DNA of 64,000 nt from sequence record MT995927.1. One strand, given 5' to 3'. Position numbers and translations under genes: made by a program. The notes under the pieces were generated by a model. The model saw only the letters and a list, made by a program, of their open reading frames with translations. It was not told the DNA's origin and did not search any database. This document shows, in pieces, positions 50,195 through 54,857 of this stretch. The first letter of the stretch is position 1, and the number at the start of each line of letters is the position of its first letter.

Positions 50195-50214
50195 GCCCTC
50201 CTTCGGGAGGGCTT
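50195..50214 (+). terminator. intrinsic terminator
   Basis: GCCCTCC-TTCG-GGAGGGC-TT. Confidence 0.8.
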
Positions 50215-50239: not shown

Positions 50240-50680
50240 ATGAAAGCGTTCATCCCAAAATGGCGCCAAGACCCAAATAACGTTGACCATAAGTATGGTT
50301 ATGAACTGAATGCATACACCTCTGTTTCTGGTACTCGCGTCTTCATCGAACGTCGTGTTGAATACTACAATAAGAAAAAGAAACAATGGTGCGATGAAAC
50401 AATTCAAGTAATTCATCTTGGTAAACTGAATTGTTATATTTGGAAACACTATCCAGTTATCAGTTTCAGAGATGTTGGTGTAATCTACGGTCGGTTAGAA
50501 TTTGATGAACTAAAGAAAGTAAATAAACTTATTCAGAGTTCAAATTCCGTATCTATTGAACTGATGGAATCTATTTCAAAAGAATATCAGGTTTATATCA
50601 CAGCTGTAATTAATAACATCAAATATGTGTTCAGCCCTGAACGTACTTATGTATCTGATGAGGGTTACGTAGATGACTAA
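50240..50680 (+). CDS. hypothetical protein
   Basis: 146 aa, AAGGA SD. Confidence 0.8.
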   Translation: MKAFIPKWRQDPNNVDHKYGYELNAYTSVSGTRVFIERRVEYYNKKKKQWCDETIQVIHLGKLNCYIWKHYPVISFRDVGVIYGRLEFDELKKVNKLIQSSNSVSIELMESISKEYQVYITAVINNIKYVFSPERTYVSDEGYVDD

Positions 50681-51134
50681 AGCAACTACTAATATCGTAA
50701 TACAAGAGAAGCTTAAAGAACTCCGTCATAATAGTGATTGGATGTATTACATGACTTCCCAGTTCACTAACTGGATGTCAATGACTCCAGGTGCACTGAA
50801 TTATAAAAACAACATGACACCAGATGAGTATTACGAGCATCTGGTAACTTGGCGGGTGATGACTGAGGATCTAATCCGAGTTCGTAAATCAATTGGTATC
50901 AGTATGTCAGGTATGATTAGTGATACACTAACACATCTTGATGTAAATGAAGTAATGTGTGAGTTCAGTGTATCAGCTAAACTACGTGTTCATCGCAATC
51001 ATTGGAAAACCAATATGCTTTACTTGGGTCTTGACTGCGGTGATCATCTATGGCGTCCTAAAGAACGAGTATTCGTAGTTGGTCAAACGGAATGGTCTCG
51101 TTTCCGCGATGCTATTGTCAATGGTGTTTACTAA
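50673..51134 (+). CDS. hypothetical protein
   Basis: 153 aa. Confidence 0.8.
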   Translation: MTKATTNIVIQEKLKELRHNSDWMYYMTSQFTNWMSMTPGALNYKNNMTPDEYYEHLVTWRVMTEDLIRVRKSIGISMSGMISDTLTHLDVNEVMCEFSVSAKLRVHRNHWKTNMLYLGLDCGDHLWRPKERVFVVGQTEWSRFRDAIVNGVY

Positions 51135-51166
51135 GTGATTCCTTTATGTATTTAGGATAATTAAAA

Positions 51167-51679
51167 ATGGCAAAAACACTCCGTGTAGTACGTGTCCGTG
51201 ATGGGATCGTTGATAGTCTTAATAACGATGGTCTATGGGTTAACAAACATACCTTTTGTATGGAAGAGGTATGGGAAGCCCACAAACAAACAACCCAATT
51301 CCAGTCTTACAACTGGGGGACTATGTACTTCGTTAGTGAAAATGATGTAGCATGTAATCCATATCCTCATCATCAATACCGTGAAGTATGGATCTGTCAA
51401 CGAGGTGTGCAACAAAAACTAGAACTATGTGAGGATTTAGAATCCGGTATAGTTGGGGATGATCATGTTGTAGTTATTATGACTACCACGGATGGATTAG
51501 ATTATAGTTTTGTGAGTGGTGTGTATGGCGACCGTATTAACTACAGTCCTTACTATGGTGATGCCATTTCTATACCTTGTACCAATAATCAAGAAGCAGA
51601 CGATGTCTATCATATTCTAGCTAAAATGGCTAATGGCATAAGTCTATCTGTTCCTCTAGTAATGAAGCTGATTAAATAA
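51167..51679 (+). CDS. hypothetical protein
   Basis: 170 aa. Confidence 0.8.
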   Translation: MAKTLRVVRVRDGIVDSLNNDGLWVNKHTFCMEEVWEAHKQTTQFQSYNWGTMYFVSENDVACNPYPHHQYREVWICQRGVQQKLELCEDLESGIVGDDHVVVIMTTTDGLDYSFVSGVYGDRINYSPYYGDAISIPCTNNQEADDVYHILAKMANGISLSVPLVMKLIK

Positions 51680-51686
51680 AGGAGTA

Positions 51687-52052
51687 ATGATTATGGATTA
51701 TAAATGGCATGATAAGTTCATTATAGAAATTATTAGTAAAAGTTGTAAAAAAGATGGAATTGGTAAAAGTTACTTAGTGCGTAAAGATTGGAGAGATGTT
51801 AATCAGCGTGATTACGCCATTCTATCACGTATTGGTTTCCATGATGCTCTTTTGCTTGATGAACATGAAGTCGAATACTATTTGAACAATGTAGCATTTG
51901 ATATCGCAAAGGCCGTATGGGAGTCTGAAGGTAAACCAAAAGATACTGATATGCATATTCGGGCATTGCGCGTAGATATGGATAGCCTATCTAATAGATT
52001 CAAGATATATACTGATATAAAACTAGATATGGATAAGCACCGGAAATCGTAA
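51687..52052 (+). CDS. hypothetical protein
   Basis: 121 aa, AGGAG SD. Confidence 0.8.
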   Translation: MIMDYKWHDKFIIEIISKSCKKDGIGKSYLVRKDWRDVNQRDYAILSRIGFHDALLLDEHEVEYYLNNVAFDIAKAVWESEGKPKDTDMHIRALRVDMDSLSNRFKIYTDIKLDMDKHRKS

Positions 52053-52092
52053 AAGATATCCATCGTATACATTTATTAATAGGAACCTACAA

Positions 52093-52449
52093 ATGCAACT
52101 AGATAAAGACAAATTGAAAGAATTGGTAAATATCATTGAAGAGAATACACGCCTTAAAGGTAAAGTATTCCACCAGGAAACCTACTCCAGTATTCATGGT
52201 GAAATAGAGGTTCGCAGTTACGCTGGTAATTTCATTTTCTATAAAAATCATACTACTGAACAATATGCAATGTTCAATGTAGAGTTTGACACACATGGTA
52301 AGGTAGTTAGATTCATAGCACCTGCACTATTACGTGCGACTATTATTTGGGAATTGAACGAAGAACCAGAATACTACAAAATCAACATCGAGCAAATGCT
52401 GATCGAAGCAGTAACCAATCACTTCAATACTGCCACACTACTACCTTGA
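52093..52449 (+). CDS. hypothetical protein
   Basis: 118 aa. Confidence 0.8.
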   Translation: MQLDKDKLKELVNIIEENTRLKGKVFHQETYSSIHGEIEVRSYAGNFIFYKNHTTEQYAMFNVEFDTHGKVVRFIAPALLRATIIWELNEEPEYYKINIEQMLIEAVTNHFNTATLLP

Positions 52450-52483
52450 AGTTAATTGATAACCATAACTCTTATAAAGCATA

Positions 52484-53011
52484 GTGGATTTTATTATGAA
52501 TAAACCAGAATTACTTTACCATGGTTCTCTTTATAAACAAGATGAATTAATGCCAGGATTTAAAAGATCTGGTGAACTTGTTATGTGGGATGGTATTGAG
52601 TCTAACCAATACCTATATGCAACGTCATCTGAAAAAGATGCATCTTATTTAGGTATTGGTAGCGCTATCGAAAAGTTATTTGATAGTGATAGATATGCTA
52701 CTGTTGATAGGGATATTACAATCTATTGTCAAAATAATATCGATAAAAGTGATATTTTAAAAATGGTTGTGTATGTTTATACCATTCCATTTAGGGACTC
52801 TGACAAATGGATTAAGAATAATAATCCTCACAATAGCATTGATACTGAGTGGATTACGAAAAACACTATCCATGATGTTACTGTAAGGAAATTAGATATT
52901 GGTGAATTTTTAAAAGGTGCTCGCTTAACTGTCACTAAAGCACCAGTGGATGTTGATCCATTAAACATCATGTCACAATATCGTTCAGTAACAGAGCGTT
53001 ATCTGTTTTAA
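52484..53011 (+). CDS. ADP-ribosyltransferase-fold protein (Arr-like, H-Y-E)
   Basis: LYHGS..LMPG..SG...NQYLYAT...A...VYVYTIP...TEWIT. Confidence 0.6.
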   Translation: MDFIMNKPELLYHGSLYKQDELMPGFKRSGELVMWDGIESNQYLYATSSEKDASYLGIGSAIEKLFDSDRYATVDRDITIYCQNNIDKSDILKMVVYVYTIPFRDSDKWIKNNNPHNSIDTEWITKNTIHDVTVRKLDIGEFLKGARLTVTKAPVDVDPLNIMSQYRSVTERYLF

Positions 53012-53026
53012 TTAAATAGGTTAATT

Positions 53027-53491
53027 ATGTATCACATATCGACAGTATACCTTGGGGATTATGTTTTATTAAGGCCATATATTCCAAGTAATAGAGCTGA
53101 TGGCGAAGACAGTGTAACCAACCGTATATGTGTGGCCCCATCAGTTATTGAATGTATTGCAGCTAAAAGCGGGAGTTATGATATCGATCTTAATTTACTT
53201 GGTTCTAAATCAACTATTTACGCATACCGAAGTAATTCTACTGACTACATTATAGGAAATGTACCTGATCAAAAACAATATAGGGAACACTGGTATTTAA
53301 AACCAACTTTATTTGCGTATGTTGGCTCTCTGCAATTATTAGAGACTGGGGTGATTAAGGTAAGTAGTGAAGTCGATATGCATTCTAAATTAATGGTATC
53401 ACATCGGTTAAACTACTTCAATAATATTATTAGTAAAGAAGAACTAATACACCATTGGCATATAGAGGCTTTATCTATTTTAAATGGTTAG
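53027..53491 (+). CDS. second ART-fold-like protein
   Basis: MYHIS..LRPYIP..ED..TNRICVAPS..C...IYAY...VPD...REHWYLKP...VG. Confidence 0.5.
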   Translation: MYHISTVYLGDYVLLRPYIPSNRADGEDSVTNRICVAPSVIECIAAKSGSYDIDLNLLGSKSTIYAYRSNSTDYIIGNVPDQKQYREHWYLKPTLFAYVGSLQLLETGVIKVSSEVDMHSKLMVSHRLNYFNNIISKEELIHHWHIEALSILNG

Positions 53492-53511: not shown

Positions 53512-53519
53512 TATATTAC
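53512..53519 (+). promoter_or_regulatory. early promoter (family B-like)
   Basis: AATTTATTTAAGATC-TATATTAC. Confidence 0.8.
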
Positions 53520-53950: not shown

Positions 53951-54823
53951 ATGGCACGTCGTTCTAATAAAATTCGTATTGGTTTTAACGTATCGCTTAA
54001 AGCGCTTGAACGAAATGGATCTGATGTAATTAAACTACATGATGACATCATATCTTGTTTTAGTGAACTATATCAAAATTACGTAAAAATTGATACAACT
54101 ACTGACAAAGATGACAAATCACTAAAACAAGGCATTATTGATGTCGTGGTGTATGTCGATCTAAATACAGCGAACCAAGCCATTCGTTTTAAAGGTATTA
54201 GTGATCTGGTAAACCATCTACAGTTTAATGTAATGGCGAATGATGTTATCGTCGATACAAGTGAATATATTCAGCCTAGCCATATGTCATATATCGAAGA
54301 TGGTCACCTGAATATGTTAGTGCGTCGAGAAGGTAAAGAGGTTATCAAAACCATTTTCACTGATGAATATGGTGTTGATCCACTAGTTAATAATGGATCA
54401 ATAGGAGATGGATGTAGTGTTTCCGGGATCTATCTAATCGGTGAAGAAAATCGGGTTAATAAACTGGCACGTATTGTTTCTAACAACATTCGCAACGGAG
54501 AGTTTAATTTCAAGACCGAAATAGGTATCCGTAAATTCTATTGGAGTGTACTCGGAAAACCAAGTGCGCAATTTAAGTATATCCACAGTGTGGTATTTAA
54601 GTACATCCACAATGAAATATGGAACCGTAATAGTTTCTATGTGGATACACTGATTAAGCTAACCAATGGCAAAGTTTATAGCTATGCTAAGAATGGTTTT
54701 GTTGGTGGACCTACTGAACTAGAATTCCATTATTATGGTGTAACTGATCGAGAAAATTGGGATAATGCGTCAGACAATTTCCTATATCAGGAATTCGAGC
54801 AAAGTTGGTCTGTAAAAATCTAA
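53951..54823 (+). CDS. hypothetical protein, probable paralogue of 54880
   Basis: 290 aa; CSV.GIYLIGEENRVN and KNGF. Confidence 0.8.
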   Translation: MARRSNKIRIGFNVSLKALERNGSDVIKLHDDIISCFSELYQNYVKIDTTTDKDDKSLKQGIIDVVVYVDLNTANQAIRFKGISDLVNHLQFNVMANDVIVDTSEYIQPSHMSYIEDGHLNMLVRREGKEVIKTIFTDEYGVDPLVNNGSIGDGCSVSGIYLIGEENRVNKLARIVSNNIRNGEFNFKTEIGIRKFYWSVLGKPSAQFKYIHSVVFKYIHNEIWNRNSFYVDTLIKLTNGKVYSYAKNGFVGGPTELEFHYYGVTDRENWDNASDNFLYQEFEQSWSVKI

Positions 54824-54828
54824 TACAT

Positions 54829-54857
54829 AAAGGGCTCTTCGGAGCCCTTTATTTTTT
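54829..54857 (+). terminator. intrinsic terminator
   Basis: AAAGGGCTC-TTCG-GAGCCCTTT then a T-run. Confidence 0.8.

Follow-up and report, generated by a model that had tools for sequence, protein, structure and literature searches.

The window analysed here, a 64,000-nt stretch of sequence record MT995927.1, belongs to a phiKZ-type jumbo phage and contains two adjacent genes, gp282 and gp283, which on the basis of their structural models probably encode small enzymes of the ADP-ribosyltransferase (ART) superfamily, independent of each other, early and dispensable. Both proteins are predicted to have the ART fold and to keep key active-site residues. They are new sequence families inside a well-known superfamily, and their interest lies mainly in the phage that carries them: phiKZ serves as the model for nucleus-forming jumbo phages, and the majority of its early genes lack an assigned function. 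If active, gp282 and gp283 would offer two testable entry points to how a phage whose transcription is independent of the host RNA polymerase uses NAD+ to manipulate its host or to counter defences. In the literature searched, no published naming of gp282, gp283 or any phiKZ ADP-ribosylating enzyme was found. The accessible part of the jumbo-phage survey reports ARTs in all jumbo-phage groups and as commonest in the groups without their own RNA polymerases (Iyer et al., 2021).

The window shows a GC content of 31-42% and carries nearly all genes on the + strand. The 4-kb around gp282 and gp283 is 99-100% identical to about 40 Phikzvirus phages of Pseudomonas aeruginosa, and the 1008 bases flagged in the initial annotation (52484-53491) match phiKZ at 99.9% and contain PHIKZ282 and PHIKZ283. 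This interval holds two same-strand ORFs, as annotated, but its GTG start at 52484 is displaced: the match to PHROG 13483 opens at residue 5 of the GTG-started ORF, and the ATG at 52496 is the start in all gp282 homologues, including PhiPA3 gp341 and 201phi2-1 gp406 (516 nt each), so gp282 is placed from this ATG (Table 1). In the phiKZ reference, the CDS of gp282 begins 18 codons downstream (MPGF) and is missing the first beta-strand and the conserved His; this late start would probably mislead annotation and expression constructs. The gp282 product shows a predicted ART core at approximately residues 1-140, followed by a C-terminal extension (residues 143-171); in gp283 a compact predicted ART-fold domain extends from residue 1 to near 115, and two C-terminal helices modelled with low confidence (118-153) come after it. 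Each gene is single-copy in the nearest relative genome compared (G001), and no paralogue of either was found in that genome or in the window. In some records gp283 is left unannotated or gp282 is named 'recombinase', a name for which nothing was found in support.

Table 1. Features of the gp282-gp283 region, in window coordinates
Feature	Position	Strand	Basis or remark
Strong terminator-like hairpin after gp277	50195..50212	+	7 pairs, 6 GC, then T-rich tail TTCTATTT
Upstream GTG and four codons, in ORF list	52484..52495	+	probably untranslated
gp282 (PHIKZ282 orthologue), 171 aa	52496..53011	+	ORF, ATG supported by 46 homologues
H9-G10-S11 codons, gp282, triad position 1	52520..52528	+	ends strand 6-11 (model)
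Y41 codon, gp282, LYAT strand, triad position 2	52616..52618	+	strand 40-43, then helix 46-62
E118 codon, gp282 (TEW), triad position 3	52847..52849	+	opens strand 118-121
Spacer gp282/gp283, 15 nt	53012..53026	+	sequence
gp283 (PHIKZ283), 154 aa	53027..53491	+	ORF, 179 remote relatives, AF2 model
H3 codon, gp283 (YH[VIL]S strand beta1), triad position 1	53033..53035	+	strand 2-5
R33-I34-C35 codons, gp283 (RICVxP), position-2 strand	53123..53131	+	strand 33-37, then helix 40-48
D81 to E87 codons, gp283 (VPD...T.E.W)	53267..53287	+	E87 just before strand 88-90
TATATTAC, phiKZ early-promoter core motif	53512..53519	+	gp283/gp283.1 spacer, T-rich stretch upstream
Strong terminator-like hairpin after gp284	54827..54852	+	11 pairs, then T run

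Judged by sequence searches, gp282 and gp283 each appear to found or join a family that no curated database describes. The word search recovers 46 relatives of gp282 (39-98% identity) and the profile search 162 clusters, all named 'hypothetical'; the family is conserved among nucleus-forming phages of Pseudomonas and among metagenomic contigs as large as jumbo-phage genomes. For gp283 the word search finds near-identical Phikzvirus copies only, and an exhaustive HMMER scan finds 179 representatives at E<=0.001, all of them covering residues 1 to about 105; the relatives outside Phikzvirus are 24-40% identical and scattered over other phage-like contigs. Searches of Pfam, NCBIfam, PHROG annotation and PDB sequences, with single sequences or profiles, gave nothing named for either protein, nor do the source names of the relatives include a named family; in the Pfam, NCBIfam and PDB sequence and profile searches no sequence-level relation to any known ART was found. 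Two families with at least 162 and at least 179 database clusters, respectively, are absent from Pfam and NCBIfam. A relation of gp282 to DUF6886, suggested by the Atlas, was not reproduced by HMM scans and is a lead only.

Residue conservation was counted in family alignments of 121 sequences for gp282 and 151 for gp283. H9 of gp282 is present in 119 of the 121 sequences and the other two are N-terminally truncated, that is, all 119 full-length sequences have it; within the same HGS motif, G10 is found in 109 and S11 in 116 of these 119. W31, D32, E35, N37, Y41, Y95, N110, N113, E118 and T121 are invariant in the gp282 alignment. The gp283 family keeps R33 (149 of 151), D81 and E87 (148 each), W89 (146), C35 and C43 (145 each) and Y67 (144). 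H3 occupies 135 of the 149 residues at its column, and about 10% of the relatives are without this His. The strand motifs listed in the initial annotation are present as described: LLYHGS (residues 6-11), YLYAT (39-43), VYVYT (92-96) and DTEW (116-119) in gp282, and MYHIS (1-5), RICVA (33-37), IYAY (65-68) and EHW (87-89) in gp283. Since they lie in predicted beta-strands and comprise the most conserved columns, these motifs are the conserved core of two real families.

The split beta-sheet alpha/beta core of the ART superfamily is recognised by structure comparison in the models of both proteins. The AlphaFold2 model of gp282, built from the family alignment, shows a pLDDT of 93.8 and a pTM of 0.86. 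Its Foldseek PDB list is formed almost wholly by pertussis toxin S1, KptA/Tpt1, ParT, Arr, RES, TreTu, cholera toxin and DarT, with weak E-values (>=0.06), and in the viral model library it also matches models annotated as Arr, ART-PolyVal and DarT. The AlphaFold model of gp283 shows an overall pLDDT of 83.2; within residues 1-105 most values exceed 88 and the lowest stretch, residues 51-60, falls to 69, and the C-terminal helices are at 60-70. The top Foldseek matches of gp283 are cholera toxin A, TreX and Arr; an independent language-model search puts it beside clusters of Arr-ms (0.95, with 170 features in common) and, by structure, near DUF3990 (TM 0.47). The fold had been assigned by eye and a Foldseek comparison with ART structures proposed as a check; this comparison bears the assignment out, as confident models of both proteins retrieve almost only ART-fold structures. 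It is very unlikely that the assignment is an artefact and that gp282 and gp283 are small alpha/beta proteins which resemble ARTs and have another function, because two search engines and the language-model search agree on one superfamily for two unrelated proteins. The only competing matches of gp282 are C-terminal subdomains of adenylating enzymes, which cover residues 43-171 and skip the conserved N-terminal strand, and the structural list of gp283 contains no peptidase or other competing fold. In the gp283 variant of the artefact reading, the conserved Cys and His could form a thiol hydrolase; a cysteine hydrolase was set aside because the structural matches do not include such a fold.

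Three positions are diagnostic in ARTs: a His or Arg that ends beta1, a Tyr or Ser-Thr-Ser on the core strand that follows and leads into a helix, and a Glu, Asp or Gln that opens the fifth core strand. With residues equated by secondary structure, strand order and aligned ranges, not by superposition, gp282 is predicted to have the canonical H-Y-E arrangement, formed by H9, Y41 and E118, with the His-Gly-Ser signature. HGS at the end of beta1 is the nicotinamide-site motif of the H-Y-E class of ARTs. An invariant Asn-rich loop (N108, N110 and N113) precedes E118. On the same equivalences, the predicted site of gp283 is divergent: positions 1 and 3 are kept, position 2 is a Cys, and R33 and D81 are conserved in addition. 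The beta1 strand of gp283 reads H-[VIL]-S, with no Gly after the His. Residue 1 of the gp283 model is aligned to residue 7 of pertussis toxin S1, so that H3 would face the catalytic Arg9 of the toxin. The second core strand, R33-I-C35-V-A-P, shows a Cys where Tyr or Ser-Thr-Ser is normal and where gp282 has Y41; E87 is the residue at triad position 3 and D81 is located in the preceding loop. Neither protein shows an S-T-S strand or an E-x-E motif, and both have His in beta1. gp283 is therefore best described, from its model, as a putative divergent minimal ART (H...R-x-C...D...E-x-W) of a family sporadic over other phage-like contigs. Of the two proteins, gp282 is the one more likely to be enzymatically active.

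We infer NAD binding, catalysis and class of target as follows. Each protein would bind NAD+ in the split beta-sheet cleft, where the beta1 His (H9 in gp282, H3 in gp283) and the residues that follow it would hold the NAD+, and the Glu that opens the fifth core strand (E118 and E87, respectively) would activate the ribose-nicotinamide bond. The ADP-ribose may then be passed to a host macromolecule, as an aid to takeover or to disarm a defence.

The closest structural neighbour of the gp282 model is the C-terminal NAD+ lobe of KptA/Tpt1 (for example, T. kodakarensis KptA 9ld3 and mouse Tpt1 7yw2), and its neighbours include the nucleic-acid ARTs KptA, Scabin and DarT. These likenesses raise a sub-case of the preferred explanation with another target, in which gp282 would be KptA/Tpt1-like or DarT/Scabin-like and would ADP-ribosylate RNA or DNA ends or bases, or remove 2'-phosphates, for RNA repair or to mark nucleic acid of the host or the phage. 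We consider this target unlikely. Only KptA residues 90-180 align, the N-terminal RNA-binding lobe of KptA has no equivalent in gp282, and Pfam PTS_2-RNA (PF01885) matches neither gp282 nor gp283 and is found nowhere in G001 at E<=10. In addition, gp282 is acidic (pI 5.4; family median 6.4) and protein-targeting toxins score within 1-2 Z units for it. Two further differences from KptA/Tpt1 are the invariant Glu at triad position 3 of gp282 and a family-specific insert, W31-D32-x-x-E35-x-N37, between beta1 and beta2. The DarT family model matches neither protein.

The identity with the rifampin ADP-ribosyltransferase Arr (2hw2, 9iaf) is just 11-14% in structural alignments, gp283 differs from it by the Cys in place of Tyr at position 2, and Pfam Arr-ms (PF12120) has no match to gp282, gp283 or their aligned relatives, nor any in G001 at E<=10. 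gp283 is 8-13% identical to the ART domains of pertussis-, cholera- and LT-type toxins and of TreX/TreTu. The pertussis, cholera and LT toxins have an Arg in beta1 and an S-T-S strand, whereas gp283 has a His in beta1 and an R-x-C second strand, and it lacks secretion or delivery domains; the Pfam toxin and ART families have no match to either protein. T4 Alt, ModA and ModB are phage-encoded ART-fold enzymes which modify the host RNA polymerase and other proteins, and the initial annotation used them as a functional analogy; ModA and ModB are expressed in the early phase, as are gp282 and gp283. No sequence match and no listed structural match to Alt, ModA or ModB was found for the two proteins. 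The T4 enzymes belong to the R-S-E class, and the features of this T4 or toxin class (Arg in beta1, S-T-S, [QE]-x-E) are absent from gp282 and gp283. Because phiKZ genes are transcribed by its own polymerases, this phage has no evident reason to redirect that of the host. AcrIF11 (6kyf), listed as an anti-CRISPR, appears in the structural match lists of both proteins; it is an ADP-ribosyltransferase, a small stand-alone anti-defence enzyme of Pseudomonas mobile elements.

In published RNA-seq data at -2, 2, 4, 6, 8 and 10 min (Gerovac et al., 2024), PHIKZ282 shows values of 0, 133, 342, 481, 604 and 738, and PHIKZ283 of 0.2, 218, 550, 842, 1057 and 1333. Both genes are therefore early, with RNA by 2 min; in the same data, the values of PHIKZ001-004 and other non-early genes do not reach 30 (Gerovac et al., 2024). 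The RNA of gp281 is four-fold above that of gp282, gp282 is 1.6-1.8 fold below gp283, and gp283, gp283.1 and gp284 are level, which points to attenuation before gp282 and then to a start site at, or greater RNA stability from, gp283. The two terminator-like hairpins of Table 1 are the likely 5' and 3' limits of a gp278-gp284 transcription unit. Around the gp282-gp283 spacer no strong terminator was found, and the one hairpin there (52982-52998) is weak, with 5 bp. The motif TATATTAC begins 21 nt past the gp283 stop and is the core of the phiKZ early-promoter consensus (PMC7058600, Table 2); the window contains 13 copies of this 8-mer against 8.9 expected, which is no enrichment. The earlier proposal that the two genes are co-transcribed and end just before an early promoter agrees with the position of this motif and with the 15-nt gap free of a strong terminator, but no rise in RNA-seq follows the motif (218 for gp283 and 224 for gp283.1 at 2 min). 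Co-transcription and use of the promoter motif at 53512 are plausible.

Both proteins are detected by Grad-seq mass spectrometry, with log10 iBAQ of 8.86 for gp282 and 9.48 for gp283: gp282 peaks in the light fractions 2-3, with 63% in the pellet, whereas 71% of gp283 is pelleted and the remainder peaks in fractions 18-20 and, to a small extent, in the light fractions (Gerovac et al., 2024). Among the entries covered of an SEC-MS table, PHIKZ283 is present and PHIKZ282 is not (Fossati et al., 2023). Neither gene is needed by the phage in the laboratory. Of the two phage TnSeq tables, one gives 8 insertion sites in gp282 and 7 in gp283, and the second gives 16 and 19, respectively. The TnSeq authors describe phiKZ orf184-304 as largely non-essential, many insertion mutants of phiKZ genes that are not essential have been isolated, and a natural isolate (Wadjak 2, below) carries a deletion that extends into gp282. 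For the two antisense oligomers directed at PHIKZ283 the phenotype field is blank; for others it reads +, +++ or tox.

gp282 and gp283 are accessory genes of two unrelated families, not a coupled pair. A common origin was rejected on the basis of hhalign, which gives a probability of 0.5% between the two family profiles, that is, no relationship. The gp282 orthologues PhiPA3 gp341 and 201phi2-1 gp406 have unrelated flanks with no gp283-family ORF nearby, and BLASTP finds no conserved gp282 neighbour across phiKZ, PhiPA3 and 201phi2-1. Conversely, gp283 relatives are found in small-ORF phage-like contexts without gp282, and no conserved adjacency or co-occurrence of the two families was found in the phages and contigs compared. 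In the natural phiKZ-like isolate 'Koomba boorn-mokiny kep-wari Wadjak 2', a 2131-bp deletion between imperfect 21-nt repeats (window 50589-52719) runs from the last part of gp278 through the whole of gp279-281 to codon 75 of gp282, so that H9 and Y41 are lost, and leaves gp283 intact. The initial annotation had read the genes as a two-gene module with a possible regulatory partner, in which one ART-fold protein would regulate, activate or neutralise the other in the fashion of a toxin and its partner. The two genes are adjacent on one strand, separated by 15 nt, and both early, as this reading expects, but it is highly improbable and disfavoured: the profiles are unrelated, each family occurs apart from the other, and in Wadjak 2 gp283 persists although the catalytic half of gp282 is gone. 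The Grad-seq profiles of the two proteins are also unlike, and their RNA levels are apart by the factor given above.

ART folds are also in non-catalytic use, for example in IcmQ, AvrPphF ORF2 and PARP13. The main rival to the preferred explanation, especially for gp283, is that the fold is right and the proteins are non-catalytic, acting as a sponge or sensor for NAD+, ADP-ribose or a defence signal derived from ADPr, or as a protein-binding scaffold; we consider it unlikely, if the most serious alternative. IcmQ, AvrPphF ORF2, PARP13 and Agrobacterium 6b, which are inactive or ligand-binding ART folds, are among the structural neighbours, and Tad1 is a signal sponge that phiKZ already uses. 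gp283 departs from both canonical triads, and it sediments mainly with the heavy fractions and the pellet, a behaviour that could suit a protein bound in stoichiometric amounts to a large complex. Against this reading, all gp282 relatives of full length keep H, Y and E although they are just 36-66% identical, D81 and E87 hardly vary among the gp283 relatives, which are 24-40% identical, and the fusion partners of the relatives are enzymes. The conservation of these residues suggests chemistry over mere binding, in line with the preferred reading of gp282 and gp283 as enzymes.

The fusions were found for both families. P0245, of 314 aa on a 125-kb contig, contains a gp282-like domain, 46% identical and with all motifs kept, joined to a YAcAr SLOG domain (40.3 bits; cut-off 28.2). 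In the accessible part of the jumbo-phage survey, YAcAr SLOG is a jumbo-phage domain known or predicted to use NAD+ for ADPr-derived signals (Iyer et al., 2021). G001, the nearest relative genome compared, has no stand-alone YAcAr, Arr-ms or PTS_2-RNA gene. The P0245 fusion may hint at a nucleotide-centred conflict role for gp282, and the heavy sedimentation of gp283 could reflect docking on a large host complex. Taken further, the gp282 family may represent a new H-Y-E clade, a conserved accessory function of nucleus-forming jumbo phages of Pseudomonas, active in ADP-ribose or nucleotide conflict and not as a classic protein toxin, and gp283 a mechanistically unusual ART (His/Arg-Cys/Asp-Glu site) docking on a large host complex. 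The two would form an undescribed NAD+-dependent layer of takeover, in which gp282 might ADP-ribosylate nucleic acid of host or phage or a cytoplasmic defence component in the first minutes of infection; this broader proposal is speculative and rather improbable. P0150, of 1083 aa, contains a gp283-like domain at residues 433-538, adjoining a GNAT acetyltransferase domain, and some of the clusters that the Atlas places near gp283 carry GNAT domains or ankyrin repeats. The gp282-like and gp283-like fusions fit effector-type enzymatic modules.

The reference phiKZ records (AAL83183.2 and NP_803848.2) start PHIKZ282 at an internal methionine, 18 codons downstream of the start common to all homologues. 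Since the annotated start is 18 codons late, the deposited protein does not contain the LYHGS strand, which is strand beta1 of gp282 and bears the conserved H9, and the truncated form has been carried over into the expression, TnSeq and proteomics tables built on the reference annotation. Naming in related records also differs. In two of them, AP019418.1 (phage PA02) and OP953026.1, the gp282 orthologue is labelled 'phage-associated recombinase' or 'recombinase', a label that none of the searches in this analysis backs, and in PA02 gp283 is unannotated despite 99.9% identical DNA. Record MT995928.1 (phage U5) shows features labelled capsid maturation protease, terminase large subunit and portal protein in this region, where every other record has hypothetical proteins; the annotation of MT995928.1 appears to be offset.

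Coordinates of the features described (window positions unless another record is named)
Feature	Coordinates	Remark
Segment missing from reference PHIKZ282 CDS	52496-52549 (phiKZ AF399011 256554-256607)	start comparison with homologues
gp282 orthologue, PA02	L001 4494-5009	
Wadjak 2 deletion	50589-52719	2131 bp
Direct repeats flanking deletion	about 50567-50588 and 52720-52741	21 nt, imperfect
gp281 to gp282	52093-53011	read-density fall
Hairpin within gp281	52323-52338	weak
gp283	53027-53491	
P0150	L007 2971-6222	1083 aa
gp284	53951-54823	290-aa product

Phage 'Koomba boorn-mokiny kep-wari Wadjak 2' (L010, OP310984.1) shows a natural deletion flanked by direct repeats. It takes out the 3' end of gp278 and all of gp279-281 and extends 75 codons into gp282; what is left of gp282 carries the annotation of a CDS of 82 aa.

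In the RNA-seq table of PMC10914614, read density falls about four-fold from gp281 to gp282 and increases again about 1.7-fold at gp283, relative to gp282. A weak hairpin is found within gp281. The fall and recovery in read density may be caused by attenuation, processing or an internal start. In the Grad-seq table of the same study, gp283 is located in the heavy fractions 18-20 and, for 71%, in the pellet; most small phage proteins, by contrast, remain in fractions 1-3. Its authors also used antisense oligomers against gp283, with no phenotype recorded (PMC10914614).

Two relatives are multidomain proteins: P0150 combines a gp283-like domain with a GNAT domain, and part of it weakly matches the shikimate-kinase family, below the threshold; P0245 (314 aa), encoded on a 125-kb contig, has a YAcAr SLOG domain fused with a gp282-like domain. 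Downstream of gp283, residues 32-220 of gp284 match the Pfam model for the N-terminal domain of Legionella SidC below threshold, with 18.2 bits for a cut-off of 25 (E 0.0013).
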